The notes: generated from the letters alone by a model not told the origin. A stretch of 64,000 nucleotides of DNA from Marsupella aquatica (GCA_973895155.1 OZ316899.1:3679455-3743454), one strand, 5' to 3'; shown: positions 13,685 through 62,269, numbered from the stretch's first letter. A program made the numbers and translations.

Positions 13685-13699
13685 CACTAGTACATTTTT

Positions 13700-14230
13700 G
13701 ACGACTTTCCGATACTCAAAATGCGACTATTTTGTTATGTCCAAACCCGAGAGTCTCGGACGTTGTCCGATACAAATACCTTCATAATGTCTGATGTGCA
13801 CCGCATCGGATTTAGTTAGTCCGATGTGTTCCCTAACGCAACCAATATCCCATATCGGTTACATCGGAACATTTCCAAACTAAATGAATCAGACATTTGA
13901 CCAGAAAAGTATTGTCAAGGGTCCGATCTTCAGGTTATCGGATACAATGTGCGTTAGAGACAACATCGGATATTTTCCGATGTTTATTCCAATGGACATG
14001 GTTTTCGTAATAGAATACTATGGACATAAATTGCGTAAGGTAAAGAATCAGAAACATTTCCGAAGTGGTCAATATCGGACCCCTCTGTTGGAACATTGGA
14101 CGAGGGGTCCGATGTTTCCAATATCGGATGTGAGTGTTCCAATAGTTGTGATATCAGACAATTGCTACAATTGAGCCTTTTGTGCTCCGATGCATATCCG
14201 ATGCAAGTTTCATCGGATAGACCATTGGAC
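13700..14230. repeat. Left subterminal array of ATCGGA/TCCGAT motifs of the CACTA element
   Basis: Many direct and inverted (C)ATCGGA(C/T) and TCCGAT copies. Confidence 0.85.
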
Positions 14231-14408
14231 ACAGGTTATCTTGAGGTTCTTAGTTGAGTGGGGTTGAGAGAAGTATTAGAGATACTTTATGGAATATGTT
14301 TTATGCAAGAGTGGACATTGAGAAACAAATATAGTGCCGAGAAATATATAATGTCGGGAAAATAAACACAAATATGGTAGGGGGCTAGCTATAGTTGCTA
14401 CTTACTAG

Positions 14409-17400
14409 CTAAGTGGTGGAGGGGATGTCATCATCTTCCACTACAACTACGTTGGGTCTATCCTGGACTATGGATCGTGATTGAGGGATATATGGCATCA
14501 CAATAGACCAATTTGAGTCATCCGGATAAGGTAGGTAAAAACATTGCTCAAGGTGATGTGGGAATGCAAACGGATCTGAAGACCTCCAATTTGAGCTGAT
14601 AACACTTGTCTTCAACCAAGTAAATCCGCATGCATCATCTTCACATGTACGATTGTGGCCCACAAGATTCATCTTGAACCATTTGCACTTCAATGCCACT
14701 TCCTCCAAAGTAGTATGTGCATGGTACTTCACAATTAGGATCTCCTCAATCTTTCCATAATGAGCGATAGTGGACCGAATGGGATTCCTGTCCGATGTGT
14801 TGCTCTGTGAATCCTGGGTGAACCAACCCATGACCCCACAATCTTGTGTAGCTGCCCTCTTCTCATCAAGTCGTTCCACACGAAAGTGTCTTCCCTTGGA
14901 CCACATGGCAGTCCGAGTTGTGACTATAAGTAGTCTGTGGACCATGAACAAGGGTACGAAGCTTATCAGTCACCTCTGGATAATGCAATACACTCTCCCT
15001 TGTACCCACCAAGGCATCCACTTCTAACAAGTTTGACTTCATGTATGGGTGAAACTTAGGAAATATCCGTGGTCGTTGACTATTTTGCTTCTCCTCCTCA
15101 TAAAACGACGTCCACTCCCCTACAACCTCTGGTGAGTTGTACAACATAAATGTTGTGAGTTGCAAACGCTCCGCTGAGCTTAAGCTATGTTTGTACAATA
15201 AAACATACTCTCTGCTCCAAGATGACGCTCTGCAATGCTACCTTCCACCCTAGCGCGATTAGAGACATAGATTTCATCACTCCCATATAACGCTCTACCC
15301 AATACATCCATCGACAATGCACTGGGCCTGCAATTGCAACCTCACGCACTAAATGTATGAGAAAATGAACCTGACCATCAAAAAATGAGGGAGGGAGTGC
15401 CTTCTCCAACTTGCACACAACCTCTACTCCAAATGTCTCCATTGCAGCAGTTTCATCCTCCTGTACCTCCTTCTGACATACCCATCTCAAAAGCTTTCCC
15501 AATGACCAAAGGGCATCACAAAGTTCCTCACTACCCAATCCAATAATCGCAACTGGAATGACATGTTCTAGTAACCGATGATAATCATGTGTTTTCAAGT
15601 AAGATGGCCATTTTGGAGAATCATCCCCCCCAAATGCTTTTCGGAGATTTGCGCCATAACCTGTGGGAAACCTCATTGACCCAATACGTCTGCAAAACTC
15701 AGTGCGCTCTGCCCTACTCAAAACCCAAGGAGGATGGATGTTGGGGGGGTCACCAGGGGGGTCCAAAGATGGCCAAAAACCAAGAAGACCATGCATCCCC
15801 ATCTCCTCACAACTTTCTCTCCAATTGTGGTTCTTTTCCCCATATAGATGATGAATCAATGATCTGCCCACATTCCCCTCAATGTGCATCGGATCTAACA
15901 AGTGATTAATGGGCAACTCTGACCAATATGGCAATTGTGACAATGCAGACAAATGGGTCATGCCACATCGGAGAATTTGTAATGGATCATCTGGGTCTTG
16001 AACTCTTTCCCATACCTCTCTCCAATATGTTGGGACCCTTTCGCTGAGGTTGAGGACGAGTATCGGGTTGGCCGTCTTCAGTATCATACAAGAAATGATC
16101 ACTCCTCCAAGGATGGTCTTCTGGAAGATATTTGGTATGGCCAATGTAAACTATCTTACGCAAAGTACTTGACTTGCGTCTTGCCACACCCTCCAAATCT
16201 GGTCCGCACGAAGGGCAAGCTCTATAGCCTGATGTTTGCAATCCATAGATATATCCAAACCCTGCGCTTGATCAATACACAACCAGCCAATGAAATTAAG
16301 TTAAATGATACAAATTATAACCAAAAAAATTTAATTAATAAGCATGGTGTAAATAGATAGCAATGGAAATAAGGGTTTAATACCCTACCTGGCAAATCAT
16401 GCATGGTCCACATAAGAATGGCCTTCATGGTAAATGTGCGGGATAAACCTCCAGTGTTGTCACATCCGTCATAACAATCCACCCCACTCCAAAGTTTCAA
16501 AAGCTCATCAATCAAGGGTTGCAAGTAAATGTCAATCTTTTTTACTTGCTTAGGACCAGGGATGATCATTGAGAGTAGTAGATGACCTTTCTTCATGGCC
16601 ATCCATGGAGGGATATTGTAATTTGTGAGAACTACAGGCCATACTGAATATGGCTTAGCTTTACCTGCTAATGCAAAAGGACTGATACCATCTGCTGCCA
16701 AGCCAAGTCGAACATGTCGCGGGTCAGTTTTGAACTCACCCCATCTGCCCTCTACAAATCGATTGGCAGGAGAGTCTATCATCATCCGCATCGTACTAGA
16801 GTCTGTACCCATATCCAAACGATGTTGTGAGTGCCAGACCATATACTCAGCCAACTCTGCACAACGATATTGATGGCGCAATCGAGGGATGAGAGGAAAG
16901 TACCGCATAACCTTTTGAGGCACCTTCCCCGTCAACATGTCATCACGGAACCGCGGCTTCTCACACATAGGACATATAATTGCATTCTCATGCTCACCCC
17001 TGAAAAGAATGCAATCATTCACACATGCATGTATCACTTCATATTTTAGGCCAATGGACTTCAACACCTGTTTAGCCTCCTTCCAAGAGCTTGGCATGTT
17101 GTTGCCTGGTGGTAAAATATGATCATGTAGGGTACGAAAAACATCATCCAAAAGTAGGTTGCTTGCCCCATGTCTTTGTTGCACATTCAACAACAACATT
17201 ATTGCTGAGAGCCGAGATAGCCTACTCCCCTCAAATATGCGAGTACGAGCATGACGTTGAGCCTCTTCCCATTCCTTTTGCTGCCCCCTCCTAGAGACAT
17301 GCGGATGAGTGTTGTTGTCATCCTGGCTACCCATGTCCTCCATACCAATGTCCGCATCATCGTCATAGAACTGATCCATGAGCTCATCCATGGCCCTCTC

Positions 17401-18944: not shown

Positions 18945-20270
18945 CTACATATCATACACATCCAACATGTAAGGCGGATTCAACAACTTATCATGTTTAA
19001 AACCACAATTAAAGAGATATATAAACATCAATTGCCCTACCTCAATGATACCCGCGCTTTGCCGTGCCTATTGGGCTGTATTCTCTACACACAAGGTGTG
19101 GGATATCCAAAATCTCTGCAGGGTGGAGATGAGTTACACAAATGCTGCATAAATGCAAAAAAGTACTTGACTGACTTTTGGCACACGATATATCAAACTT
19201 GCCAAAGCAGACCTCAATGTTCCAATCCAAAATGGATGGATGGGCCGGGGAATTACATCATACCTCATGGATGCGCGGTCTCACACTGTGCATAGTGCAT
19301 TGTCCAAGAACAAAACCCTACCTAGCTACCCCCCTCAACCCAAAAAAAACAAACCTAGCTACCCCTCGATCAAAACCTAGGTACTGCACATAAAATCCAA
19401 TCACAACCATTAGTGTAACAAAGGCTTAACATTATCCTCAAAAAATGTCTAACAATATCCTATGTATTAAAACCCTATACCAATAAATCCCAAAACCCCT
19501 CAAAGCCCTAAAGTCCTTCAAAGAGAATTGGGATCAATTATAGTAAAAGAGTAAATCTAGGTACCACTTACTAGCCAAAACACCTTGACTTATCCTTGCA
19601 TCCATCACTCAATGTTGAGCAAGTTAAGGCCCTATAATTACAATACTATACAACTTAGCTTTATAAATTTAGTGTGCAATAAATTAAGCATGCAATCACA
19701 ACCATATTTTAGTTATCTTAGGAAATACAAAGTCATGAACTAACCCCAAAATTGTAGTTGCGAAGAAGGAACTTGCAAGAGGCCGAGTAACATATACACA
19801 ATATGCCATCCCGTTCATGGTGTTACCTAAAAAAAACCGGATATATTCAAAACGACCACAAAAAAGTGACTACAACCCTCCCTTCTATTACCCCACCCAA
19901 TTACTTAATTCCATGCTCCACATACAAACCCAAACACCCAAACTAAACCCAAAGTAAATAGATTTGACCTCCTATGGGACCAAAACATGGAATCCGTCAT
20001 AGCTGATCGAGGGGTCCGATACTAAAACAAACAAAAGCACCATCGTAAAAGCAGGAGAAAGAAAAGCAAGGAGGGGTCCGAAGCAAAACGCATCGGAAGG
20101 TCCGATTGTAGGTCCAATTCTTTCGGCTTCGGACATTGTGTTGCATAAAGTATCGGAAACAACATACCTGTTTTCAAAAAATAAGTCCCGATGCGGATGC
20201 AAAGATCCGGGCATCGGGCCAAGCTTTGCATTCCGTGTTTTGCGAGGCCGGGAGGCTCAGGTAGACGTCG

Positions 20271-22664
20271 GTGGGCAAGGAGAGAGACATGGTGGGAGGA
20301 GGATCAGGTGGTGGGGATGGGGCTGGACCCTCTCGGCCTTATGATGAGATTATGAGGGAGATTTTTATGAGTAGGGCAAGGCTAAGTGCCGAGGATGCAG
20401 AGAGAGTTGTGCCACTTCTTCAGACCTTGATTGATGGATCCAGGATTGAGGCAGAGAAAGCTGCGGCTGCAACCATTGCTGCAGAGAAAGCTGCAAAGAA
20501 GAAGCAAAAGGAGGCAAAGAGAGGCAGGGAAGATGGTGAGGAATCCCTCTCTCCCCGAAAAAGAGAGAGGAAGCTTAGCAAGGCAGCTAAGGAGGCTGAG
20601 AAGAAGAGAGTGGAGGAGTTAAAGCGAAAGGAAGCTGAGAGAGCTCTGAGGCCTGAGCTAGCCCTAAACTCAGGTGGCTCCCCAATGCCGAGAGGATACA
20701 ATCTCTTCCGCAGCCAGTTCAAGCAGGTGGTGAAGGCCAATTTGGGGCCATTAGATTACTGGGGAAGGAAGACTGAGGAGGAGAAAGGTCAAATTCAAGA
20801 GCAAGTGAAGGAGCGATTCAGGAATGGGGCCTCCCTTGATGACAGGTTCTTGAATAAGAGGATATCAGCTTCACTTTCAGACATGCGAAATCATCAGAGA
20901 GAGAAGTTCAAGAAGTACCTTGCTGATTTGCCAATTGATTCAGAGGTGGTCAGGGAGCAGGGCTGTCCAGATGTGCTCTCCCTAGATGAGTGGGCAGCTT
21001 GGCTTGAGGAGGAATTAGCAATCCGAGCCTGGCAAAAAAAGAGACAATGGGACCACAAAATCAGCTTGGCAGAGGAGAAGCGGAAGGCGGGGAGGAAATT
21101 GACATCCTCCCCCTCCAACAGAACCTACGGCAGTGGGGAGCTCAAGCAGTACGATTAAAAGAGCCACCCAAGGACATCATCAAAGCATTGGAGCGAGTCC
21201 AAGGGCGGCCCATCATCACTCACCGCATGGGGCAAGGAGGCTCCAATCGACTGAAAGCAGAGTTCGTAAGTGCCTTCTCCCTCCTCCCTAGCTCCTCCCC
21301 CCCGACCACCTGACCTTCTCTTGCGAAAAGTGACTCAATTTCTGTTGCCGAATGCCTTTATGCCGTTTCAGCCCGATGTTTTTTGCTCTCGGGACTGTTA
21401 TGTCCGATACTCATCTGAAGCTTTTAGCATCGGACCTAGTATCGGACCTGTTCTTATGCCATTTAGGGTTACCGGGATCCGATACTATTCCGTTGCTTTA
21501 AGTATCGGAAACAGCATCGGACCCCTCGTAAGAACAACAGGTTTTTTAAAATGTTGCTCTTTCACTCAATTAGGGGTATGGTTTGCATTCTTCAGTACCC
21601 TAAGAAGGCATGGGACCCCTTACAAGAATTGGGAAAAGTTGGGCCGATGCAAAGACTAGTTTTCATGCTAATGGGTTTCTCGTTTGGTATTGTGATGTGT
21701 CAGGAGCGGGACTGGGGTTGACCTATTGGGCCGTCAGAGAGGGAGTTAGCAAAGAGGGATGGACCCCGAGCTCTTAAGCTCCACCTTGAGGAGGAGCTGG
21801 GAGAGGTAATTGGTGTTGAATTGGCCCTATATAGGTTCAAATTGTTTTTGGTTGTGGTCAATATTAGAGAGCTTTCAAGGAACTATGTTTTCAAATGCAA
21901 TTTAACCCTACTTATGTATTGTGCAGGATGAGGAGACAGGGTCTGATGAGGGAGAGGAGGGTGAGGGTGAGGAGGAGGGTGATGGTGAAGAAGGAGAGGA
22001 TGGCAAGGGAGAGGAGGGAGATGATTCTGAGGCATCTGTGCCCTTAGAGGGTGTGGCAGAGCGATCCGGGAGGGTGCCCCGAGTTACCCCTACCCCTGCA
22101 GTCCCTCATGTTGCCCCCACATCAGCACAGAGGGTAGGTCATATGGTGTTCATGGTGTGGCCTCCCATCAGTCAGGAGTGTCACGGAGTGCGAGGCCCGG
22201 CCCCTCAGGGGGTAGTAGAGGTGGCACGGGACCAGACCATCGCTCTGGAGTACTATCCGGTACACCTGGCTCTTCTCAACGAGTGGGTCGTGACATGGAG
22301 GATGGTGGCTCTAGGGGGCGAGCGCCATCACGTGAGTCTGGTGGGAGTACCGCACGGCATGGGCCACAGACAGCATCTGCAGGGGATGCATCCCATCACT
22401 CTCACAGGTCCGGAGGGGGAGATGGCTCCTTCCACTCTGCCGTGTCAGGGGGTTTAGAGGCATCTGTTGCACCTCAGCATCCTAGCGGTGCATCTAGTGG
22501 GTCAGGGTCCCGGCCAGCATCAGGCCAACCCACTGGTGAGTAGGTGGTTGCCACGGTTGTGGGCAGCTAGAGAGAGGAGGGGTCTTGTGTTCCTGGACCT
22601 GTACCACCCCCTCGTTCTCGCCCGAAGAAGAAGAAGGGACGCAACACACCTTTTTAGAGCTTAG
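20271..22664 (+). pseudogene. CACTA TnpA-like / Transposase_24-like accessory gene, multi-exon, divergent from the transposase
   Basis: ORF 20271..21158 (FRSQFKQVVKANLGPLDYW..QVKERF..ISASLSDMRNHQREKF). Further GT-AG-bounded acidic and Gly/Ser/Arg-rich exons at ~21.7 and 21.9-22.66 kb. Confidence 0.55.
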
Positions 22665-22959
22665 TGGCATGAGCTAGATATGTAGTGCATGGTAGCTTTT
22701 ATACTAGCATATATATGTACCATCTAGTATAGTAAGCTACCTAGGCTACTACATATTGTACATACCAGGGGGTTTCCCTTTTTGAATATGACATTTTGAG
22801 CTTGTACATATAACATTCTTTTGCATCAATCATAATTTAACCCAATTTGGCCCATTTCACCATGAAACTAACCCTAAACCTTCAAATACCAACCCCATGA
22901 GGCCCACTCTTCTATCAAGAAAGAATCACCCTTGTCCGTTACTAGTCCAATGCAATATA

Positions 22960-23520
22960 CATCGGAAAAACACCTAATTATCCCATGCTTTCAGTATCGG
23001 GACATCCGATACTCTGCTCTTCGAAAAGTCCTATACTAAACGCATCGGACCCCTCGTCCAGCAAGCATGACAAAAATCCAATGTCCGATACCGTCCATTT
23101 CAGACCATCCAATATAAAAACAATCGGATTGTCCGATACATGCAACATTGGACCTTTCGATCTATAATCCAACGGATGTTGCGATACTAAACGCATCGGA
23201 AACTCCGATGCTATAAATTACGCACATTGCGAAGCTCTAGGTAACAGAAATTCCAATATGATATGTATCGGACGCCAAGTTTTGCGATTAAGGTCACCCA
23301 AGTGGATATCCGACTCTCTTTGCATCGGATACAAAATAGTCCAAAATGGTTTGCTTTGGAAATACCTATGTAGAGAGAAACGGAAAGTCCAAAGATTGTC
23401 CGATGGTCGATGTCCGATATGTGGAGAATGGGAACATACGAAGCGGGTTACATTGGAAGTACCAAATTTAGTGTGCAACTTTCGTGAAGGGATCCGATGG
23501 AGATGGCATCGGATAAAGGC
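22960..23520. repeat. Right subterminal array of ATCGGA/TCCGAT motifs of the CACTA element
   Basis: Same motif repeated many times in both orientations. Confidence 0.85.
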
Positions 23521-26708: not shown

Positions 26709-27147
26709 TAGAAGTTTTAATAGCCTACTAGTGTGTTTTCAATAGTAATCTCTATTGAATTTTGGACTTTTGATTGTCTACACGAGCCTCGTGTTGTTCC
26801 CCCCGTCTATCCAAATACAATTTTCAATAGAAAGTTCCTCTAAGAAGAATACTCATTTCAGAATATCCATCTATGTGTAGAAGTTTTAAGAGCCTACTAG
26901 TGTGTATTCAGTCGTAATCTGTATTGAATATTGGACTTTGGATTGTCTACATGAGCCTCGTGTTGTTCCCCTCGTCTATCCAAATACAACGTTCAATAGA
27001 AAGTTCCTCTAAGAAGAATACTCATTTCAAAATATCCATCTCTGTATAGAAGTTTTAAGAGCCTACTAGTGTGTATTCAGTTGTAATCTCTATTGAATAT
27101 TGGACTTTTGATTGTCTACACGAGTCTCGTGTTGTTCCCCTCGTCTA
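26709..27147. repeat. 169-bp tandem repeat, ~2.6 copies (subterminal region of the Sola-like element)
   Basis: TAGAAGTTTTAA starts at 26709, 26878 and 27047. Each unit carries CACGAG-N-CTCGTG or a one-mismatch variant. Confidence 0.92.
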
Positions 27148-48270: not shown

Positions 48271-49365
48271 TGTGGTGCGTCCCATGGCTCTCTGAACCCA
48301 AGAAACCCCCTTGCACAAGCCAATTCCTGTAGGTTTTACTCTTAGCGAGGCTGGTTTTGCGGCTTAGCGGCATGGGATGCTGCTAACTTCCTTCTACTAA
48401 CATTTTACACACATATACTAGACAGATCCTTCATCGGGTCATGAGATACGTAGTCGGCCTCTTCTATGCCTTCCCTTGTCCTCCTCTCCTGGTCTTCCTT
48501 TAGGTATGTTTGGATTCCGCCGCTGGAATGATCCCCAACTGGCTTGGGTGAGCCGCTAAGACCTCTCTCAGCTCAACACATCCAACTCTTACTACCTTGC
48601 TTACTCTCTTCTTGGTTGATGTGGGCAATCTTCAAACAAGTTAATGCGACACACAAATAGCAAAATGACTCCTTTTGATTGAGTTATACCATACACTTGC
48701 CATACAAACAGTACTTCTCATACACAAGATCTGCAAACTAAGCCGTGAGGCCAACTCTATTCATCTCTTAGGTATGAGGAAACATGAATATACACAAGGG
48801 TCATAGCATAACTAACCGAGAGCTTCTTTAACTACTTGATCCCAGCCCTGCTAGTGCACTAAAAACTTGCTAAGGAAGAAGGCCCTGAACCCCCCGTTGC
48901 CCAGGTACTTATCCTGGCAGTGGATCTGCCCAATTTCTTGCAGCGTAAGCCTAATCTAACCTGACCATAATCTACCTATGTACAGCGGGGCAGGAGCACA
49001 AGTGTTGCTCTTACCAGTGGATCCACAATCCCACTAAGCTCAGTGTCAAGACCGTCATGGTAGTGGTGGCTGATCCTCAATGGACGCCCCCAACACTTCC
49101 TCTGCAGCCACTACCGTAGGTCCGTCCTCTGACAGATTAACTGCTCCGGACTGAGTCAACTCTCCATCGGCCTGACTGGGTCCACCCTCGGCTTTGGGAC
49201 TTGAGGCTCCTACATACATTTGGACTCCCGGCTCGTGTTCCGGCCTCCTTCTCTCCTTGGCCCCAGTAAGGGGTTTTCCTTGGTAAGTCGGCTTATGCCG
49301 ACTTTGGGAGCAATATTTTGTACCGGTCCCGTTGCCGTTCTCCTTTCCTTCTCCAGCAATTTCAG
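48271..49365 (-). repeat. 5' LTR, distal (3') segment
   Basis: Matches 39217-40400 and ends at the MULE TSD. Confidence 0.92.
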
Positions 49366-49802
49366 GGGTATAACCACCGTGACAGCAAATAGTAAATAGA
49401 TTTGCTGTTACGAGCAAATTTTTGCTCATATGAGGCTTTCAATGACTCATAGCAGAAAATCTGTTTACTCATATGAGAAACTATTTACTTGTACGAGTTT
49501 TATAGGTTATTCAAAGTTCAAAAAAATGGCTCGATGTTAAAAAATAACAACCATATAAGCGCTCTCTAAAATGCTAACATAATGGGGCCCACCATTCAAT
49601 GATAATAAACGGGAAATATAAAGGTCATTATAAGAAGACGCGCTTTATTTAACAGTCAATATATTTGCTATGTGTTTCAAACTTTGGCTAGCGCCAGGCG
49701 CTACCAATAGACAACACATTTTTCTAGATAAGAAACGGGTACATCTTATGCCCGTTAGAAAAAACAAATGCCACTTAAAGCTGTTGAACGACACCAAATT
49801 GA

Positions 49803-52800
49803 CTACATGTCCGTTCCATTTTGTCGATCAAGCAGGTAACGAACTTCGCCCAATGTCAGAACTGGTTGACTAGATAGTGTCGAATCGTGAAGACTCAACT
49901 TTAACACAGTCCTGAATACCCAATATAGATGTTTGCAAGGCATGTAAGGTTTCCTATAAATGTGCCTCCGATAGAAATCCTCACATGAACAGCAAGGGAA
50001 ACAACAAATCTGCACCCAATAAGAGGCAGCATTCCTCTCATGTTCATGTGTTCTGATACAATACTGCTTCCCCCACGCATTCCCACTCGTGACATCTCTC
50101 TCGCATACGAGCCTCATTACTTCTATTTCGGATGCTTCAATCTTCTTGTAATGTGTTTGAGTTAGATTCACTCTCTGCAAGCACTTCCTTCCATTCCTAG
50201 AGCCACATTTGAAAATTGGGTCTGCTAAATTGATCCTCTCTTAACAAATTCACATCGATGCGTAACTCAGACGGGGATGGCTCCTGAGCTTCCCTTACCT
50301 CTCCTGTACCAAGTAGACCTTGTTCTCTCAAGAATTGGATCTCGCCCTCCTGGAGATTGGTCCCTCTCGCAATGGGAAGAACGGATGGTATATTGGGAAT
50401 GTTTGAAACACCTCTTCTTGGCCGACTTTTGTGACATTTGTTGTTTGGGCAAAACCATATCTGGTCCGGATGAGGTTCTCCTCTAAAAAGTCTACATCCT
50501 CTTACAGATATTGCAACAACTCCTTCTGGATTTGGAAACTCAACCTTCTTTACTCGATTTCGACCTTCATTGCGGCTTCCTCTCCAACCGAGGGTCCCAT
50601 TACAAGCTGGACCAGCACCGCGTTTTGCAGTTCATCGGAGCTGCCAGAGACCTGGAGCTATGTCAGTTTCCATTGGGAGAAGAGATTCCTTAGGCGCGGC
50701 CTTAGCTTGATGTCCTACGGGAGGAACAGAAGATCTTGTTGTCCGACGTGAGGGTGTCTCAAGGACGACAACCTCCTCAGAATCTTCACTCTCAGTTTGA
50801 GACAAATTAACAACGCCACTTCCACCAGCAGAAGGTGTGGAAGACATCTTCTCAAAGTCTGTGGAATGGAGGTTTCTTCTCTTCAAACCCCTTGTATTTG
50901 GTGAAGTCACAAGGATAGTATCATGCCTGTGAGAGTCTTGTGCCGAGACATTCCCACTTGCATTACCTTTTCGCTTCACCGATCGAGTTATGAAGTCTCC
51001 ATTCAATGGAACAGTTCTTTCCAAATCAAATTTAGCTGCGTTGGAAAGAAGGAGATTGGTCGCTTCTTCAAATAGACGTGGAGACCCTGTCATGTCGGCA
51101 GATCTGAAAGCCAGCTCAAAGATAGTGGGTCCAGTTCCCCGATGTAATCCTCGACCGTATGCAGTATATGCTGCTATCTGACATACGGCTCGGTTTTGGT
51201 CAGTTTTGCACCCCTCCATGAGGCCAACCCGCTTCTTCATTTGCCACGCCTTCATGCCTGCATGGACCAATTCCGAACCAGTACAATTCGGAATCATACT
51301 TGCCTCCTCATCACTCTTGCTCTGTCATGGGAAACAAAATTTAGTAACTACAGTAATTCGCGACAAATGTAGTTTGTATTTATGCAATATGGACTCTCTA
51401 ATATATAAGTAGCGCCTGGCACTATCAAATCTCTTGCATCACTGCCATGTTTGTAGTTGCAGAAGTGTGCTTGTTCATACTAGCGCTTGGCGCTACTATA
51501 CTGTAACAAGGAATTGGAGTTAAAATAATCATTTTCCATATTAGCGTCGGGCGCTATTACAAATCAATGGTAACGGACTATCATGAATCTAAGAAAATCC
51601 TTACCAGCCTAATGAAGTTTCCCCATTGTCTCCAACGGACGACCCACCATGAGAGCCACCCTTGCAACATTCGAAGGTTCCCCTGATGGCAATTTCCAGC
51701 TCTCCACCAATCGTCGATCTCTCTTGACATACGATATGCGTCCAATTTTTTTTTTGCGTTACGAAGACCGTCCCACATCTTCTTGTGTTCTTTGAGTTTT
51801 CCTTCTGGAACACCTTCGCGAGAATGCCAACGAAATGACTGATAAAAATGAAACGCATCTGATCGCTCTCGGTCAGGATTAGGTACCCCATTGAAGAAAA
51901 CATTTTGCACCGCATTCCATCCAGCCTGGGCATTGTCCGCCATGAATCCTCGAATTTGAATGTTCTCCAGGCCATTTTCACTCGCAACTTCTATCATCAA
52001 TCGCCACGCTCTCTCTAAGGACTTGGTGTCTTCAGCCTTTAATTCACAAGTGAAAATTGTACAAAGCGCCCGATAGTGATGATCATATACATGAACACTA
52101 AAAGTTAGCCAATCCGATGTAATTCTATGCATGACGTCGAAACTCACCCATGACCCTTCTAATGAACCACCGGTCTGCATTTTCCGGAGAAGGTCGATCC
52201 CAGATCCTTCGCCTTTCACAGTCATCTTGAAGATGTGAGCACTTTTGTCTCGACATCCTTGTCCTGGAAGCAAATACCTATGAAGAAAGGGAAGTCTCAC
52301 ACACTTTTGCATCCGCACCAAATATTCAAGCTCACCTTTGCCTTTCTGGTCTTGTCTCACACTTCGTAGAACAGAAGCAAACTTTTGTGGGGTAGCAACA
52401 ACCATGAGGGACTCCCAGATCTCCTTCTCCTCTTCTGAAGACATTTCCTCCACGGATTCCTCACAGAGGGCATTGGTTAGAGAGTTGTAGCCGCATTCTT
52501 TATCCCAGCGGGCGTAGCTCGTGGATTAGCCTGGAACTCCTTTGCGAGGTGAGTCTTGGCAACCTTTTCAGCCTCTCTCAACCACACTCGACGACTGGGA
52601 TGGTTGTGAAATCCCATGTGCACAGCCATCCGGGACATATACGCCAAATGAGTTGAATCCACTTTGGCCGAAGGATACATATAGAACATCATGGCCGGAC
52701 ACGATCTTGTACACATCGGAGGTTCAGAACAGTGGTGACAGACAATACCACCTTGCGGTATGAGTTCTCCAACTTGAAAGGTTCCTGATAGTTTGGTGAT

Positions 52801-53495
52801 CTCGCCCAGACTTGGTTGTTCCTAGTCTTTTTGTCTCTCCAAAATTGGCAAGAATTGTTCCGACATTCAAGAGAACCGGTACATTGAACCTTTCCAAAAT
52901 CCCACATCTTCTTCGGTAAAACATTCGAAGATGTCTTGACAATGCGCGTCCAGTAATAGCAATCCTTCCCGCGGTCCATGTCCTTCAGTCGTTCCCCTTT
53001 TGAATTCACGCAATCGACTGGAGGCAACTCAAACACAACATTCCCATTGTATGTCATCGGGAGGCTGGGAACTATCTGATGCGTGAAATCCTTCTCCCTG
53101 ATGAAACGAGATAACTCGCTATGTCCCTTCGATTTTAGGATAGTATCCATCGCACTTTGCCGATATACAATTGGGACATCTTGAACCTCCATCTTCACCA
53201 CCAAGGGATCCACTGAGATCCTTTTTGGGACATCAAAGGAAAGGGGCAAATTCTTCCCGTCGTCTTCCGAAGTGTCAGACAGATTGACAACATCAACACC
53301 ACCGGGAACAGGACATAGATCTTCCAATGCTTCAGAATCTTCCAAAACAAAGACCTCGTATACTTTCTCCGGATACATCGTCCAAAACTTGAGTCCATCG
53401 ACGACATCATAGAAGATGGTATTTGCCTTTGAATCCTTAGGGAGGAGGGACACAGAGAGAATACACTCTTTGGAAACATCAAATCTCAACCCCAA
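49803..53495 (-). pseudogene. MULE transposase with N-terminal GCM-like domain, DDE core and C-terminal SWIM finger
   Basis: YNGNVVFELPP..YWTR..CTGSLECRNNSC..CPA..RMAVHMGFHNHP (GCM/WRKY-like fold); SFDVMHR..GFMADNAQAGWNAV..DAFHFYQS (MULE DDE-like); CSCEDF..PCKHLYWV (SWIM). GT-AG intron 51604-51322; stops and frameshifts present. Confidence 0.82.
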
Positions 53496-54241
53496 GTATT
53501 AATCCAAAACTCTCCTTGACTGAGATTCAGGGGATACGATAACCGTGACGACATCCCGCGTGTCCTTGCGTCTCACTACGATCGATCGTCCCATTTCAGC
53601 GGAAGATAATAATCGATGTCTCACTTCCCCAATCGGTTTAAGGCTTGTTTAATGTACAAGGTTAATAACGACAATATAAACGAACGTTGAATAATGACAA
53701 ATAAAGTTACGTTAATGGTTTGGACAATGTAAATCAATTGAATTTTGTCGTTATTCAACGGCTGTATTGAACCAGCTTAATTGTCGGGAGTTTAATAGCG
53801 CCGGGCGCTACTTTTGTGAACGGGGAACAACTTGACAATGGAAGCATGACTCTCGACCGAATATAGTACCGCATGGCGAGGAGGATAGGGAAAACTCAGA
53901 TCGTAATAATAGCGCTCGACGCTATCATCAAAGCTTGTACGTTATACCTCTAACAACAGACAGGAAATCCGTGACTCGATCCAAGTATGCACGTGTGCAT
54001 TTAAGTTTTCACAATCGACGCATCTCGGACGTCAATTGCACGATCAAAAACCATTACATCTGAGACGTCCACGGAAATCTGAACGTTCTCACCTCTATCC
54101 TCAAAACCTGGCCGACGAGTCTGCCTCTCACCATTTGAAGTTCTTTGTTCTCATAAACATTTTTTGCGCTCCCGCGTCCGGTTTCATACGAGAAACCTTT
54201 TGTTCAGTCTCGATCATTCAGAGTTGTTTGTTTAAGTTTCC

Positions 54242-54667
54242 ATGGCTCCACCACGAGCTAAGGGGAAGGCACAGGTTACATTTCGAAGCGGTAGTGATGG
54301 AGAGGGCGCTGAGGAGAAGTCTCTCGTGAAGCCTCCTTCTCATTTGAACGTCCCGATCTCGGCGAAAGGGAAAGTAATTGCAAAAACCCGGGTTGTATCC
54401 GCACCAGATGGTGCTCCTCAGGCTAAAGCAGAAGTTCAACCCGTCACGCAGAAATGTCGGGTGTCAAAGGCGGGCTTATCTTTGTCGAACCTGCCACCTA
54501 GACATGAAAAAAGTTCTTCAAGTGAAGGCGAGGATACAGGCGATGATGCAGGGACCCACGACGAGTCGGGGTCCAACGACGACTCCTCCTGTAGTCGGGG
54601 TGGGTTTTGCTGGGGCGTTGGTTCTAGCGATTCCAACGATGATTCGGACGCGTACAAGCCAAGCTAG
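54242..54667 (+). CDS. Low-complexity S/D/K-rich ORF, possibly the first exon of the MULE cargo gene
   Basis: 141-aa ATG-initiated ORF (MAPPRAKGKAQ...) just downstream of the divergent intergenic region. The splice link to 55807 is not established. Confidence 0.4.
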   Translation: MAPPRAKGKAQVTFRSGSDGEGAEEKSLVKPPSHLNVPISAKGKVIAKTRVVSAPDGAPQAKAEVQPVTQKCRVSKAGLSLSNLPPRHEKSSSSEGEDTGDDAGTHDESGSNDDSSCSRGGFCWGVGSSDSNDDSDAYKPS

Positions 54668-55462
54668 TGGGAAGATTAACTGATCAACTGATCCTGGAGA
54701 TTAACGCATGGACCGTCTGATCCTGGAGAACCCAGTAGTCCTGAGTAGATTACCAACCTCATTTGGTGGAGTTTGATGTTGACAGCCACGACCAGTTGAT
54801 GCAGTGATGGTAGAAATGGTAGTCAATCTTTTGCCAGCATGATAGTCTCGGAATCTATTGGGAGGTTACTCTCATGTTGTTACTCAATATTTCGAGACTT
54901 TGTGAAGTAAAGCCAATACCATTAAATGGAGTTTGAATCTATTAGCCATTCCCTTATGCATTTTTCATTATTCAGTTTGTGTTTTTTGATGTTTTGCCTT
55001 ACGGGAATGAGTAAATCTTTTCACCAAATGTCTTTTGAAAGTCTTCGTAATGCTTGTAGTTTTTGATGGAATGGTCTTACCCATGACAGGTTCCATATTA
55101 GCGCTCGGCGCTAGCATTGGAATGCTCAAACTTATGCTTCTAACACCAGATGGATTCTTAAATATTTGTGGATATGTAAGAGTTTGTATTACTCTCTCGT
55201 GATGAGTAACATCGATTTGGATGTGATTTATGATAGCGCCGAGCGCTAATAACGCTTATGGATAAAATGGTCCAAATAATGTCCATTTTGTCCATCTATC
55301 CATGAATTCCATTTGAATTGTGTAAAATATATATGTGTGGGAGATTTGTTAGCGCTCGGCGCTATTGAAATTAGTAGTTTGAATCAGGTAATATGGAGTT
55401 GTTTTTGCTAGCGCTTGGCGCTATCAATAAGGCCAAAACGATCAACGGTCATATTTTAACGG

Positions 55463-55540
55463 TAACACTGAGGATTGCTAGTCACGCGTAACCTTGAGGA
55501 TTGCTGGTCACGCGTAACATTGAGGATTGTTGGTCACATA
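55463..55540. repeat. 26-bp tandem repeat x3
   Basis: TAAC(A/C)(C/T)TGAGGATTG(C/T)T(A/G)GTCAC.. at 55463, 55489 and 55515. Confidence 0.9.
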
Positions 55541-55806
55541 AGACGGTTTTTTGGTCCAATGGTAATCTTCCAAGTGTTCAGATCTGTTGGTGTTACCATT
55601 GAGCAACACTCTAATGTGCTCAAGACTCCATGTCTTAACCTTCTGATTAGGCTTGGCGCTCGTGGGAGAGACGTGATTCTCCTGGACCAGCCTGTTTGAG
55701 CGTGACATTCTATACCTGAGTCTGTTACTCCGTACTGGATCAGGGGCTCTAGGAGAGTTGTACGATATTGTCCGACGTTCTGCTCAACGCCATCACCATC
55801 TCTCAG

Positions 55807-58800
55807 TTGGGTAATACGAAGATGGGAGATAGTCATGCCGGTCATTCCGAGTCCTCACAGTCCTCTTTTTCAGGTTCTGTGTACACCCGTCACGTGACTT
55901 GGTCCGCTGCGTCTCATTCACATTCAAACATTGGCTCAACTCTTCCGACTGCGCGATCAAGAAGGGGGAGAATGGACACGAGTGAGGAAGTTGCTCGAGT
56001 TGATTTTGGTGTTGCTGGACTTTCAATGGACGATTACATTTCCAAGCATGTCTTGTCCTTTGGGAAAGATTTCAGAGGATTGGAGAAGGAGCCTCCACAA
56101 ATACCTCTATGTAGATTGATTCATATGGAAGTGGTGCGGACGTTGCAGAAGCAGAGCGCCTCCATCGACAAATTGAAGGAGTCATTCTGTATTTCTGGAT
56201 ACAATTCGCGCATGGGCATGCTATTTTACGTACAGCCAACGAATGCGGATGGGGTTCCACAGATTTGCACTAATGAGATTAGAGCCACTTGGGACCCAAT
56301 CTGGGTTTCCGAGAATGACAAGTTCGAGGAAGAGTGTGACGCTGATCCTGATTTCAGAGTTTTGAAGGACAAGATGTTTTGTGTCTTCGATGGAAATCAC
56401 CATTTGTATTCGTGGTCGATTGTGACAGCAGAGCATCCGGACAACATTAAGTACCACCCTCGTGTGACTTGCATTGTTTTCAATGGAGATAAAGGTTCCC
56501 TCGTGGAGCTCGAGGCTGCTATGCACGCTGTCTACCAGTAAGCCATTACTCAGGACCTCATTTAATATGACGTACTAGTTCAAGATGGATTTTGGATGTG
56601 ATATTATCTTTGGTGTTTTACTAGCGCCCAGCGCTGCTAATTTACATTTAAATTTTGACATAGGTTGGGACAAGCTGTGGTCGAGCCATCTTGGATTCTT
56701 GATGCCGACAAAATCTCTCATCTTTTATCCCGTGACCTAGAGCACTACAAACCCCTCATTGATGCTACGAGTTATGCTAAGTTTGAAGCCATTCGAAAGA
56801 AGACTCAAAAGGGTTCTTGGTATATACACAAGATGCCACAAGACGCGCTCATCTACATTTTGTGTGAGAACAAGATTAAATCTTACACAAACCAATTCAA
56901 AGTGGACATGGATTTTGTAGCCTCCCAGGGGACTCCGTGGTCCGAAGAGGAGACGCAGAAGAGGCATGAAGCTATGATGAAGGAAGCGACAAAAGACTGG
57001 GCTATCAAAGTAACAAAGATCACTCCATTGCTGCACCCTGATTTTGGTGACTACTTGGCTACATGTGCCGAAATGTTTCCCGTCACAGAGAAGAACAAAA
57101 GAGAAAAAAAGCCCGATACAGTTGTTTGCACTATGGACCGTGCTCGTCTGTTTACTGCAGTTACTTATCTGGATCCGAAGTTAAGGTGTACCCTTCTCGT
57201 TGCCCATTGCACTCCGGAGATTCGGAAACAGTTCTTTCATCCGGCTAGTGTGAACGACGATCCTGTAAAACAATGGTGCCATACCTGGCATATCTGGAAT
57301 TCAGTGGAGGAAATTGCTACTGGATTGATCCTCACCTCGCTCGAGCAGGTTTTGGATTGCATGCCAGATGATCGTCTTGTCAAGTCTGGTTGTGAGTCCC
57401 TGGATGTTCTCATGAAGTCCATTATCAAAGAATTCAAATCATTTGGAGACCTTGTCAAGGCTAAATTTTTCAACATAATGTGGCCATCAAAGTATGCAGA
57501 CAAGGAGGACTACACTGAGCAAACCCAGAAACGAGCCAAGCGATACGTTTACCGTTTCTACATGTGGATGGAGTTGCGATCTCCTGAGGTTTTGTGGGCT
57601 TACCTTGGTGCATTTCAAAAGTGGGTGATTATCAAAGATGGTGACCACCTTGTTGATCTGTATTTGATGTACCCAGTTGAGGGAAAGTTCCCACCTTGCG
57701 CCTTGTCAGAGTGGGAGAGACTCCACTGCCCATGGTATCTTGACACTGACAAATGGGATTTGCCTTTCGACGAGGTGGAGAAAGACGCTTTCATGAAGTT
57801 ATAGAAGTTGCAAATCCCAGCAAGGTACATATCGGAGATGAAGCAGGGTCTTGCGATTGAAGTGGACGCTTCGACAACTGAACTGCAGAAGAAATGCGAG
57901 ACAGTCGTCGTGCATGTTGACCGGAGCCGAAAGCCAAGAGTGAAGGCCAAGAATGAATCTGCAGCTCCCAGTGAATCAACTTGATCGCTTAAAAAACATA
58001 AGTTTGCCTCTTAGGATTCAGTAAAGTATTCCCGCTCTTGTTTGTATGACGTATTTTCCCCCAATTGATACTAGTGCCGAGCGCTATTATGAGAACTAGT
58101 TCCGTTGAGTAACGCCTCTCCGTCTTTCAGGGGGAAGGAAGTCGGATGCTACCGGTGATGTAAAAGAGGACGCTACTCCTCAGGCCTCTGAAGCTAACAC
58201 TGGTGCGGAAAATACACCAGATCAGGGAACCCCTGGGGAGAGTGGAAAGGCAGTGGTTCCAGTGGACGCGACAAGTATGAAGAAGAAGAAAAAGAGAGGA
58301 ACACTTGAGGATAGGCTCGGATCTTCGTCCCGAGATTCAATTGCGTCTACTGGATTGCAAAGAGATGTGGGGAATTTCAAACAAAAGTGTACCTCGACAT
58401 TGTTTTGTGGAGTCGAGTGTTACAGAATGTTTTGATTCCCTGTTTAACAAGGGAGAAAAGCCGGACTGGGTTTCTAATATTGAAGGTTGGGGGAAAGAGC
58501 TGGTGAAGTCTGGGGATCGAGAAAAAGGGGTTGTCCGAGGGGGAAAAGAAAGAGCTTTTGGAGTTGATGCTGGTTTCATATATCTTCCGACTGAGTTGAA
58601 ACCAACACTTGTGGATAGGAAGGTTCCTAAATGGAACCTTCAAGATTATACGATTCCAAGTGCCTTTTTCAGAACAATGGATCCTTTCCTAGCAGAAGAT
58701 GGATTGCTAGCGATTTTGCACAGAGGCGACTATGACCAAGTTTCCGAGGTCATTGCAGCTTGTCAAGATTCATAGAAATTCCAGTGTATCTCGACACACA

Positions 58801-59515
58801 ATGTTGTTATGGGCACTCCAATGTACAGGCCTCGCTCGGATATGCAGGTATGTATAGTAGCGCCTGGCGCTATTCCAAAGTTTCTGTTTGGTGTCCTCCT
58901 TTGGAGATTGACGGCAACGCTAGCGCCAGGCGCTAGTGTGGAATATCCTCTTTGTGAAATGTTTCCGTATTCTCGACGTAGCATCTGATGTTTATTATGA
59001 ACAAAACGTTATTCGATGTGCAGATTTTTACGCTCACTCTCAATGTTTTTGGGCGTGTTTCGTCCAAAGGTAGGGTCCCTAAGGATCCCAAATTTTGGCC
59101 TCTTTCACATATAGAGGATCCTTCAATAACCAATCTCATTGGTTTTCCCGTGCCAAAAAATGATCCTCTGCCGGAGCTTGCGTTCGCCCGGAATTCAAGG
59201 CTACCTGTGGGTTTCATACAGTTCGTTTTAGAATTAATTACCCTCCCTGGGGATATTGTCATGGACTGGACTGTTGGGGCCGGAAGTACATTTGTTGCTG
59301 GAGATCATTGTGGGAGGTTTGTAGTCGGGATTGAAAATTGTAAAGAGTTTCTCGACACTGCCACAAAAGTTTTCTTTGGACTTCTCAAGAATAAAGAGGC
59401 CTCCACGTCCACGCCTCCGCATCGGCAGGTGGGGAGTAAGAAGCAGGACAGACTCCGTGCTGTTCTTAATTTTGATTCTGACGAGGACAATGATGGAGGC
59501 GATGGTACGCAATAG
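55807..59515 (+). pseudogene. ParB/Srx-like domain + beta-class N6A/N4C DNA methyltransferase-like fusion gene, spliced, with premature stops
   Basis: ParB-like: IPLCRL..VRTL..IDKLKESF..GY...VFDGNHH (56389-56403). MTase-like: VDAGFIYLPT..FLAEDGLLAIL, then RLPVGFIQFVLELITLPGDIVMDWTVGAGSTFVAGDHCGRFVVGIE (motifs X-I-II). Introns 56538-56663 and 58848-59023 restore the frame exactly. Stops at 57802 and 58773. Confidence 0.78.
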
Positions 59516-60572
59516 TCCAAAGATGATGGGGCCTCCAAGAAAGTGGTGAACCTCGGGTCTTCTGAATCTGAGGATAGTGAAGAGTCTTCTGAGTAATGAT
59601 CTTCAGCTTCCCTGTTTTTTTTTTCTTTTGAAGTGTGACGTTAGTGTCTCCAACATTCCACCATTTTCCCGGACCCGACTAAAGATATCGGATTCAACTT
59701 TCCAGGTCTGAGTGGAATCTTTGGAAGCGCTTTCAACTACGAAGGAAAGTCGCTAGGAATGCAATAGAAACCCCGGAGAAGCCGTTTGTCTTGCCTTCTT
59801 ATGCAGAAAAGGCAGCTCGAAAAGCAGATTCTGTGAGAATGTTGACTTGGGAAAGCAAAGGCCTGAGGCTAAAAAGGGGCTCTGATAGAAAGTTTACGAA
59901 GAATCCCTATGTCGATGACATCATCCCGAGAAAGTATGTAGACGACGAAGCTGAGTCTACTGATAGATCACAAAGTAGTGAAGAAGAATCAGAACTAGAT
60001 TCGACTGATTCAGAATCTGATGGCTAGCCAGACTTTAAAACTTTTGGGGATATAGATATTGGCTATTTTACAAAATAGCGCTTGGCGCTATTGTGAACAC
60101 ATGTAATATTGATGGGTGTTTATAAAGTGAGATGGACTGTCCACATTGTTTTTTGACTAAACTTTCCTCTGTGAAGCGGACAATCTTAACTTGGGATGTA
60201 TTACAGTTGGGTGATATTAGAATACGACTTCCCCCTTTCCCAATGTTTCATCAATTGGCATCTGATGGTCTTTAGTTGATCTCTGTTTTTAAGTCTGTTA
60301 TTGAGGTCTGTATACTAGCGTCGGGCGCTAGTATACATATGTTTTGGGGGATACTTTTGCATATATCGTTTCGAATGAGGTTTCGGGTATTTTGGACTGT
60401 TTCAGGACTGTAGCGTTGGGCGCTAGTATTACGATGTGTTTCAAAATGATGGATTTTAGAGGTTTCGATCTCATTTTACGAGAGATGTCGGATTAGGGAA
60501 GATTTTTTTGGTGCAGACATTTGCTGCTATGAGCTTTACTGTTTGCTGTTTGCTGTCACCATGAAAAGCCTC

Positions 60573-62269
60573 CAATTTCAGTAGATTTTGCATGCCTGGT
60601 TGCTGCATTGGCAAGTCTTCCTTCCTCGGCCTAAACACCTGCTCGATTGTAGGACTATCGGGCTGGGTCGGTTTCTTTGTTGCCGGCCTCTATTCCAGAA
60701 CCTCCTCTGGTGCTCTTGCCTGTAGGGGAAGTACCGGGGCGAATATCTGACTTTGGGCATACCGGCACAACAGCGGCATATGATAGCCAAGCCGGGACAC
60801 GCTTCCCTTGCCAATCACCTGTTGTTCCTCCTTCAAGATTTTCTTCAATTGGGTGAGGAGGTATCCGTTGTAGTCCCGGCTGGGGTCTGGCCTCTCCGCC
60901 AGGTAAACCTGTGCCTTGCCGATCTCTGGCCTCGACAAGTTGCAATGCATGGTTACCTGCAAGAAATTGATCATCTCCCCAATGTGCGGGTTGGTGCAGG
61001 TGTTCCGGAAGAAGCCATTCTTTGTTGATGGCCCTGGGAACGATTGGAACTCCTTGTCAGGCAAGGTCTTCCTGGTATCAACTTTGGTCTTATTGCCCAT
61101 CGGCAAGCCAAATGCTTTGGCAATCACTCGGGGAGTGAGATAGAAATCCTTCCCATACACCCTTGTGGAATTGGACTTGGGCTCCCAGGATCCCACAAAT
61201 TCTAATAAGTCTGAATCCGGCACCTCCGGCTTCAGCCATGGTAACTTCACAAAGGCTTCCAAGCCGAGTCCGGCCATGAAGCCTTGGTACTTCCAAGTCT
61301 GCATAGCCGTAAAGCATGCATCCTCTTCACATGCAAAGTGTAATTGCACTTCCTCGGGGAGGGTCGCCACCCAGCCTTTCCAGGTGTCATCTCTTGTCGG
61401 AACGACATGGATGGGGTCGACCTCCTCTTCTTTGGCTTCTTCCTGCCTCCTGCTCCCTTGCTCGACTGGCTTCCTTGGTGCCGCCGACCTCGTTCTCTTT
61501 GTAGGGGTGGTCTCTTCATTGATGTTCCCTTTTCTCTTCATAGCGGCTGCCGTGGATGTTTCTTCTAGCACGGTTGCCTTCGTCCACCCCTCCGTGATAC
61601 CCTTCAACTCCCAGTGTATGTCGTTGCAGCGGTTGATGGCTTCCCAGATGCCAACTATTTTGTTCTCACAAAATAGAAGATCGTCGAGTTCGTCGGCAGT
61701 AGGCATCCACAGGAATTTAGTCGTGATGAGTTCTCCTCCTAAGAAGGCAGACTTCTGCAGCTCCCACAGTCGAGCGAGCTCCTACCATTCTCGAGCGGCT
61801 CTCTCCGATTCTTCGTCCTTGTAGGTCCCAATGTACTCAGTTTCCCGTTCTAACAGGCATCCCCAAAAATGAGCAACTTGATTGACGTTGCTCATACCCT
61901 TCTTGAGTTGATTATCGGTATCTGCTTCCACCCCGAGTGCTTGCCTGAGCAGCGGACAGTAGTTGGCCTCCGGTAGTTGTCTGCTTGGTTCGTGCTTGCA
62001 AATGAGCCACCATTCCTTGCGATCAATCCTTACCCCTCCCTGACTGGTCTTCCTTCCCGTTAGTTACCCATAGCCGCCGGCACTTAGCGCGCCCTAACCC
62101 TAATCGTGTTCCCCCCCGATGTTCTTACTTCCGGCCTCGGCTCGGGTTCCATAGCCACCCTTAATTGTTTATATTTTCCATCTTTTTGCTACTATACTAA
62201 TGTGTTTCCAGGGTTTACTCCTTATTTTATCATTTAAACTGGCCTAGTTATTCCTGGCTAGGCATCACA
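60573..62269 (-). repeat. 5' LTR, proximal (5') segment
   Basis: Resumes exactly where 49365 stops and matches 40400-42073. Confidence 0.92.

Follow-up and report, generated by a model that had tools for sequence, protein, structure and literature searches.

The 64,000-nt stretch of DNA analysed here (the window; GCA_973895155.1 OZ316899.1:3679455-3743454) comes from the liverwort Marsupella aquatica and contains an 11,207-bp Mutator-like element (MULE). Within this element, a transposase gene and an accessory gene with ParB/Srx-like and methyltransferase-like parts are transcribed in opposite directions and accompanied by an array of 17 copies of the palindrome TAGCGC-N3-GCGCTA. The boundaries of the element, proposed in a preliminary description of the window, are backed by a perfect 9-bp target-site duplication, CAATTTCAG, at 49357-49365 and 60573-60581; duplications of 9–11 bp are a hallmark of Mutator-like elements. 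The terminal inverted repeats are imperfect, with 47-nt cores that are 72% complementary, and both ends start with GTGACAGCAAA. Because the CpG observed/expected ratio is 0.73–0.80, the duplication is perfect and the open reading frames (ORFs) are open, this copy of the element looks young.

Distribution and symmetry of the palindromes

Scanning of the whole window for TAGCGC-N3-GCGCTA gave 10 perfect copies and 7 with one mismatch, all of them at 49689-60425, as against 0.00 and 0.03 expected from dinucleotide shuffles. Copies with two mismatches were absent from the window, as were copies of any kind outside the element. The seven arm mismatches are all transitions. Spacing between copies is irregular (59-2254 bp), and clusters of copies spaced 55-135 bp apart are frequent. 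The counts, the transitions, the spacing range and the confinement given in the preliminary description could be reproduced, down to the position of every copy.

The site itself proved to be longer than first described. The dyad of two 6-bp arms is real, but conservation reaches ~4 bp further outwards on both sides and does so symmetrically, giving a full conserved site of ~23 bp with the symmetrised consensus WYR-N-TAGCGC-Y-N-R-GCGCTA-N-YRW. The spacer, which had been read as YYG or its complement CRR, fits that description in 15 copies and is better written as Y-N-R, which holds for 17/17 (CNG in 7, TNG in 7, CNA in 3 and TNA in 0); this adds one degenerate pair to the dyad and leaves the centre base free. 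The dyad is obligatory: every TAGCGC (13/13) and every GCGCTA (14/14) in the element falls within the 17 sites, with no solitary half-site.

None of the 17 copies overlaps an ORF-exon, although ORF-exons make up 58% of the element; the probability of all 17 lying outside them by chance is ~4e-7. (Exon boundaries were set from ORFs, homology and splice-site reading.) Three copies lie in the transposase intron, six in the intergenic and accessory-gene 5' region, four in accessory-gene introns and four in the 3' and subterminal regions, so that both the partition and the exclusion from coding sequence given earlier were recovered. Comparison of 40 bp on each side showed that the flanks of different copies are unrelated beyond ~4 bp. 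The array is therefore not a small repeat unit inserted repeatedly; a miniature inverted-repeat transposable element or other small mobile palindromic unit, which the preliminary description had named as the finding that would overturn it, was looked for and rejected, with no shared flanks and no copies outside the element. Confinement was assessed in the window and in 90 fetched loci, and copies outside elements were seen in none of the loci examined.

Coordinates of the element, its genes and its repeats within the window
Feature	Position	Strand	Remarks
Mutator-like element, 11,207 bp	49366..60572	.	contains all 17 palindromes; target-site duplication, terminal inverted repeats, transposase neighbours
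Left terminal inverted repeat core (GTGACAGCAAA...)	49379..49425	.	inverted repeat, without palindrome
Right terminal inverted repeat core	60513..60559	.	inverted repeat, without palindrome
Palindrome copy 1, perfect	49689..49703	.	subterminal, 3' of transposase gene
Palindrome copies 2-4 (51410, 51481, 51542)	51410..51556	.	transposase intron after ..QWGNFIRL|gt
Palindrome copies 5-6 (53796, 53910)	53796..53924	.	divergent intergenic region
Palindrome copies 7-10 (55099, 55234, 55350, 55409), all perfect	55099..55423	.	upstream of ParB-like exon
Palindrome copy 11	56622..56636	.	accessory-gene intron c1/c2
Palindrome copy 12	58072..58086	.	accessory-gene intron c2/c3
Palindrome copies 13-14 (58858, 58921)	58858..58935	.	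accessory-gene intron c3/c4
Palindrome copies 15-17 (60076, 60316, 60411)	60076..60425	.	subterminal, 3' of accessory gene
Three tandem 26-nt units with TTGCTAG	55462..55539	.	just downstream of palindrome copy 10
Transposase gene, multi-exon	49803..53495	-	ORF-exons, relatives, ESM Atlas
Transposase ORF-exon, zinc-finger region	~52689-53495	-	DGH-W...C-GH-C-N-C
Transposase ORF-exon, DDE core	~51581-52453	-	
Transposase ORF-exons	~50632-51297 and 50200-50631	-	
Transposase ORF-exon, C-terminal Cys/His region	~49803-50180	-	SWIM in the preliminary description
Possible first exon of accessory gene	54242-54667	+	
Accessory gene	55768..59515	+	ORF-exons c1-c4; transcribed opposite to transposase
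c1, ParB/Srx-like	55768-56541	+	DGNHH
c2, 379 aa	56665-57804	+	no Pfam match, no informative ESM-Atlas neighbour
c3	58305-58775	+	degenerate motif IV, YLPT
c4	58988-59515	+	PF01555 C-terminal part with motif I

Palindrome versions in related elements

Related elements were found in the liverworts Calypogeia fissa and Riccia sorocarpa and on metagenome contigs (loci are given L numbers below; W is the window element). Each carries its own version of the palindrome, written here as a symmetrised consensus, and the ten versions, 21-27 bp long, span the close clade of the transposase tree and share a core GC(T/C)A(G/A)CG or GCGAG. Among the metagenome elements, L010 has 3 copies of TATTGCTAGCGCC/GGCGCTAGCAATA, L005 has 2 copies and 2 decayed ones of TTGCTAAYGG-NN-CCRTTAGCAA, and L003 and L001 have 2 copies each of TATTGCCAGCG-N3-CGCTGGCAATA. 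The R. sorocarpa elements carry 14 copies of AAGCTARCG-N5-CGYTAGCTT (L006) and ~20 copies, in two variants, of TTCCGGCGA-N3-TCGCCGGAA (L090); those of C. fissa carry 25 copies of TATTGYTAGCGAG/CTCGCTARCAATA (L007) and 12 of ATCTYRGMGAG-S-CTCKCYRAGAT (L004). The counts in L007, L006 and L004 were reached by no shuffle. The site of the window element differs from that of L010 in an additional base at the centre and a less strict outer flank, and an inner GCGAG/CTCGC core is common to L007, L090 and L004; from their sequences, the versions look like descendants of one ancestral site. The motif TTGCTAG in the tandem units at 55462-55539 equals the outer half-site of the L007 and L010 versions, and these units may be a relic of an older palindrome version, related to the array.

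The versions occupy equivalent places. In W, L004, L007 and L010, the ..WGNFIRL|gt donor that follows the transposase core exon has the first local copy 18-45 nt downstream, and L005 and L006 have palindromes of their own in the equivalent intron, the remainder of which cannot be aligned between lineages. The intron before the methyltransferase exon is likewise occupied in the window element (58858 and 58921), in L001 (3073 and 3175) and in L007 (4934); equivalents of the c1/c2 intron are occupied in L007 (7442) and L006 (5949/6202), and that of the c2/c3 intron in L007 (5816-6029). L006 and L007 also have palindromes in their remaining accessory-gene introns, between the divergent genes and in both subterminal regions. 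Because positions match while intron sequence is unalignable, what is conserved is the presence and location of the palindrome, and its sequence changes in concert within each lineage.

More distant relatives, with 25-36% transposase identity, often have arrays of different dyads, with CAACTTT-N8-AAAGTTG occurring in L036 and L080 and dyads of the GGGAGTC type in L050/51, L057, L084 and L086. In L007, L009, L036 and L080, copies occur in true tandem repeats. Of the 6 close relatives with sufficient flanking sequence, 5 have a ParB-like gene (W, L001, L006, L007 and L090), and the gene is still found with this transposase family where transposase identity is down to 26-33% (L008, L036/37, L054-56 and L080).

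Three of these loci have further structures of their own. Two 1,123-nt stretches of L007 (12783-13905 and 19241-20363), which are 100% complementary to each other, enclose the 3' half of the transposase gene; they are the product of a recent inverted duplication or else belong to a nested element. L004 has a separate array at 14193-14733, between the two groups of its main palindrome, comprising ~7 units with the dyad TGCCTT-N11-AAGGCA. A 45-bp-period tandem array of GTCCCGG-N-CCGGGAC dyads occupies 7034-7516 of L009, upstream of a distant transposase relative and beside a CACTA Transposase_21 ORF.

The family to which the window element belongs is high-copy in two organisms, as judged from contigs of four public runs, and its copies decay mainly by C-to-T and G-to-A changes. 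Among the 40 variant positions listed, out of ~1,146, none falls inside a palindrome, with ~1.2 expected, a difference that is uninformative on site conservation. Contigs of organism B (runs X3 and X4) join 55252 to 55345, removing the stretch between two neighbouring palindromes, which suggests a change in copy number through recombination between palindrome sites.

Element-encoded proteins as candidate binders

The transposase is tentatively assigned to the MULE type from its core exon, for which 256 relatives were found in a library of 1.8 billion proteins and whose nearest ESM-Atlas clusters were PF10551 MULE in 10/10 cases (scores 0.92-0.95). Pfam hmmscan gave no match of any kind in the transposase pieces of the window or in 10 relatives, and MULE (PF10551, PF00872), SWIM and FAR1/WRKY were likewise absent among exon pieces, relatives and alignment members. 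The N-terminal Cys/His region, which resembles DNA-binding domains, is conserved; its WRKY/GCM1 label comes from short signatures and language-model neighbours, and the AlphaFold2 model of the exon is poor (mean predicted local distance difference test score, pLDDT, 42.1). The GCM-domain label of the preliminary description likewise has motifs and such neighbours as its basis.

In the accessory gene, Pfam support is limited to the C-terminal part of PF01555 (positions 163-220, 30.8 bits versus a cut-off of 26.7). Motif I of this methyltransferase-like region, DWTVGAGST, is kept in L001 and L007. At the position expected for the catalytic motif IV, which was assigned by spacing from motif I without a profile alignment, YLPT (window), FLPK (L001) and CLPN (L007) stand in place of (D/N/S)PP(Y/F/W), the DPPY-type motif. 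Judged by these residues, the methyltransferase-like half appears to be no longer catalytic and might instead contribute to binding DNA or S-adenosylmethionine. Exon c1 carries the signature FDGNHHL (56400-56415), which reads FDGNHRL in all relatives; a DGxHR or GxxR signature after a beta strand is what we take to be the mark of the ParB/Srx superfamily. ESM-Atlas leads for this exon were DUF3723, ParB_N, DndB and DUF1015, and a PDB sequence search with the ParB-like profile gave no match. The ParB/Srx label thus rests on motifs and language-model neighbours. For c2, no Pfam match and no informative ESM-Atlas neighbour were obtained. Of the earlier label ParB-methyltransferase, then, the second half stands as a partial PF01555 domain lacking the DPPY motif, whereas the first was confirmed neither by Pfam nor by structure.

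Several relatives are decayed copies with in-frame stops, and the ParB-like exon has such stops in most of them (L001, L006, L007, L008, L036, L054 and L080). Two of these replace an Arg or Trp of the window's ParB-like protein, and the stops are consistent with methylation-driven C-to-T decay of silenced copies. Elsewhere in the window, the ORF at 20271-21155 was tested as a ParB-like candidate and was not ParB-like, and a profile built from the element's ParB-like exon had no match at 11817-13687.

We interpret the 17 palindromes, with a probability of roughly two in three, as double-stranded DNA sites that would be bound by a dimeric, sequence-specific protein encoded by the element, for control directed at itself. 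We favour this because the sites change in concert within a lineage, consist of an obligatory dyad with a free centre, have symmetric flanks and are confined to the non-coding DNA of the element. With sites in every non-coding part, such a protein would occupy the whole body of copies of its own family and no other DNA. Its likely purpose, by analogy with VANC proteins on VANDAL elements, would be self-directed control of chromatin or transcription, either as anti-silencing or as self-marking. Protein and site would co-evolve, so that an ancestral palindrome of 21-27 bp would have diverged into a separate version in every lineage; lineage-specific versions at equivalent places are the pattern expected of sites co-evolving with an element-encoded dimeric DNA-binding protein.

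Several observations weigh against this interpretation. The window copy has DGNHH where all relatives have DGNHR, and its accessory protein may be impaired despite open ORFs. ParB_N and related Pfam profiles found no match in the window protein or its relatives even at E <=10, the AlphaFold2 model of the ParB-like exon is poor (pLDDT 45.7) and leaves a ParB fold unconfirmed, and neither a helix-turn-helix nor any other DNA-binding domain was recognised in c2. The distance between conserved cores varies by 1-2 bp among versions, to which a rigid dimer would have to adapt. Finally, the association of gene and array is incomplete in both directions: tblastn from four lineages and a profile search found no ParB-like gene in the array-bearing loci L004, L009, L050/51 and L086 (Pfam on other ORFs of L004 was uninformative), and no clear array was seen in L008 and L054, which are ParB-bearing and heavily decayed.

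As to which protein would bind, we tentatively place the accessory ParB/Srx-like protein first, at somewhat less than even odds. It is favoured because proteins of the ParB family act as dimers on palindromes scattered along a replicon; because the ParB-like gene stays with the transposase family at such low identity; because the terminal repeats, where a MULE transposase is expected to bind, have no palindrome; and because published algal transposons pair ParB-like genes with inverted-repeat arrays or with a proposal of self-binding. A more specific version, which we consider rather unlikely, is a eukaryotic counterpart of ParB-parS or KorB-OB, in which a ParB/Srx-fold dimer would load at the palindromes, spread or slide from them until the element is covered in full, and shield it against silencing or mark it, with mutually exclusive versions defining lineages.

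Alternatively, the transposase might bind the palindromes with an N-terminal zinc-finger region of WRKY/GCM1 type and use them as internal sites for regulation or anti-silencing, acting as transcription factor for the element that encodes it. We regard this as doubtful, though the strongest of the competing explanations. All array loci, including the ParB-less L004, L009, L050/51 and L086, have just one protein in common, the transposase, and L004 sits within the close clade of the transposase tree (99/93 support) with long open transposase ORFs; in addition, the conserved Cys/His region resembles a DNA-binding domain, and the AtMu1 transposase is reported to bind cognate copies by itself and to clear them of methylation (bioRxiv 10.64898/2026.08.24.746577). 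On the other hand, the terminal inverted repeats, where AtMu1c chromatin immunoprecipitation peaks lie, are without the palindrome, so that the ends appear to be recognised for transposition through a different specificity. Fingers of the WRKY/GCM1 type are mostly specific for short, asymmetric sites, the AlphaFold2 model (pLDDT 42) does not confirm the fold of this region, and the loci without a ParB-like gene may be derivatives supplied in trans. The transposase tree was also used in an attempt to tie a version to one protein, but this did not discriminate, because the version of the nested L004 is a derivative of the L090/L007 core. The proposal that the palindromes are cis sites of an element-encoded trans factor is strengthened by finding versions at the same non-coding positions, with the two binders named earlier, the ParB-methyltransferase and the transposase, as candidates. 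Likewise, the suggested co-variation of motif and cargo protein across subfamilies is seen as different palindromes at the same positions, a pattern that does not single out one protein as the partner.

Formation of hairpins in transcripts or single-stranded DNA, for example to control intron splicing or retention, appears improbable. The location of most copies in introns or untranslated regions would suit it, as would the first copy at a short, similar distance from a conserved 5' splice site in four lineages, an unconstrained, loop-like centre, and the retention of a G-U pair on the presumed sense strand by 6 of the 7 one-arm changes. However, it is sequence, not just pairing, that is conserved within a lineage, with no differing copies that keep pairing; the unpaired-looking flanks and the Y-N-R positions, too near the centre to pair, are conserved as well; a 6-bp stem with a 3-nt loop is weak; and copies also lie in the divergent intergenic region and near the ends. 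Decay by C-to-T changes of the non-template strand accounts for the G-U bias just as well, and wobble-pair asymmetry was for that reason dropped as a test for RNA hairpins.

It is even less probable that the array is functionless, having arisen as a side effect of expanding tandem repeats, of gene conversion between copies or of a tiny palindromic unit that inserted many times. Such an origin would account for the frequent clustering, for the true tandem repeats in four relatives and for the deletion joint between two neighbouring copies in organism B, but not for unrelated inter-copy flanks in the window, for the occupation of at least 6 separate non-coding compartments and of homologous introns across species whose sequence is otherwise unalignable, for the persistence of CpG-rich sites in a family decaying by transitions, or for the absence of copies outside the element in all loci examined. 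Least probable of all is that the palindromes are chemically marked as targets of an active element-encoded N6-adenine or N4-cytosine DNA methyltransferase: the PF01555 part with motif I, the palindromic targets typical of such enzymes and published suggestions for algal transposon homologues point that way, but motif IV is degenerate in three lineages, sites of 21-27 bp far exceed methyltransferase targets in length, and the versions have no short methylatable core in common beyond CG.

Relation to known self-recognition systems

Among systems studied by experiment, the nearest parallel is VANC in the VANDAL elements of Arabidopsis. VANC21 of VANDAL21 binds a 9-bp motif that has accumulated in non-coding sequence (introns, intergenic and terminal regions), strips its own family of DNA methylation and co-evolves with that motif (Hosaka et al. 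2017, PMC5735166); the comparison with VANC targets made in the preliminary description fits this distribution. Shared with VANDAL are the Mutator-like transposon, the accessory gene and the accumulation in these same regions of a short family-specific motif that is rare elsewhere, often locally clustered and different between related families. In contrast to the 9-bp, asymmetric VANC motifs, which keep one orientation, the liverwort sites are obligatory palindromes of 21-27 bp; the accessory gene is ParB/Srx-like and methyltransferase-like in a liverwort host, and no VANC homologue was found.

Accessory genes of a similar kind have been described in algae. Red-algal Plavaka elements have inverted-repeat arrays next to the ParB-like accessory gene PAG3 (bioRxiv 10.1101/2025.02.11.637652), and Ectocarpus Sola1-1 has a ParB-like and methyltransferase gene opposite its transposase, with binding to its own element suggested (PMC12477816). 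The preliminary description overstated the novelty, algal ParB-like and methyltransferase genes and inverted-repeat arrays having already been reported. The ParB-like N-terminal domain with a PF01555 module, opposite transcription and inverted-repeat arrays are common to these elements and ours, and their authors likewise proposed self-binding and self-modification. They differ in host and in superfamily, being EnSpm/Plavaka and Sola1 elements, not Mutator-like ones. In Plavaka, moreover, the ParB-like domain is fused to a 2-oxoglutarate (2OG) oxygenase, and its arrays have been described as tandem repeats next to the gene, whereas in the liverwort family the sites are spread through all introns and the two ends, the catalytic motif IV has degenerated and the versions lie at homologous positions.

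Multicopy palindromes dispersed over a mobile replicon also characterise the bacterial ParB-parS and KorB-OB systems, where a dimeric ParB-family protein reads them; the half-site of the 13-bp OB site bound by KorB of RK2, TTTAGCGGCTAAA (PMC11790492), contains TAGC. The liverwort sites are longer, the protein has neither a demonstrable helix-turn-helix or cytidine triphosphate-binding pocket nor a Pfam ParB_N match, and, unlike a bacterial replicon, a eukaryotic nuclear transposon needs no partition function. With the subterminal motifs of CACTA/En-Spm elements, which are bound by TnpA, and with transposases acting as regulators (bioRxiv 10.64898/2026.08.24.746577), the family has several points in common, namely a protein encoded by the element, numerous short cognate sites that face both ways, and family specificity; those motifs, however, are single half-sites of variable spacing and subterminal only, whereas here dyads of fixed spacing also fill internal introns.

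The window contains a probable example of the CACTA arrangement, outside the MULE. Around 42 of the 60 ATCGGA/TCCGAT half-sites of the window cluster at 13700-14220 and 19980-23510, including three perfect ATCGGA-N3-TCCGAT dyads and a 24-bp-spaced run; the clusters flank a CACTA element (Transposase_21, DUF4218, DUF4216) with a SET-domain ORF and look like classical subterminal transposase or TnpA sites. A further palindrome, CACGAG-N-CTCGTG, was observed at 26781, 27119, 27278 and 35878; two of its copies share ~12 bp of flank on each side and are probably part of a longer repeat.

Accessory genes of the ParB-like/methyltransferase type in eukaryotic DNA transposons, the idea that they bind inverted repeats of their own element, and the non-coding motif arrays of VANDAL elements were all in print already. 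New here are their combination in a land-plant Mutator-like family, a long palindrome of fixed spacing in every intron, the series of versions at homologous positions and an apparently inactive methyltransferase module. To our knowledge, experiments have demonstrated only for VANDAL/VANC that a transposon can thereby recognise copies of itself and de-silence them. The liverwort family would be a second plant system, independent and much older, with unusually long and clean sites. It offers ten natural variants of specificity at homologous positions together with two clear candidate binders, and it makes the published conjecture that ParB-like/methyltransferase proteins bind their own element directly testable in terms of protein, half-site and spacing. 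The versions also provide a simple sequence marker by which these liverwort elements can be classified.

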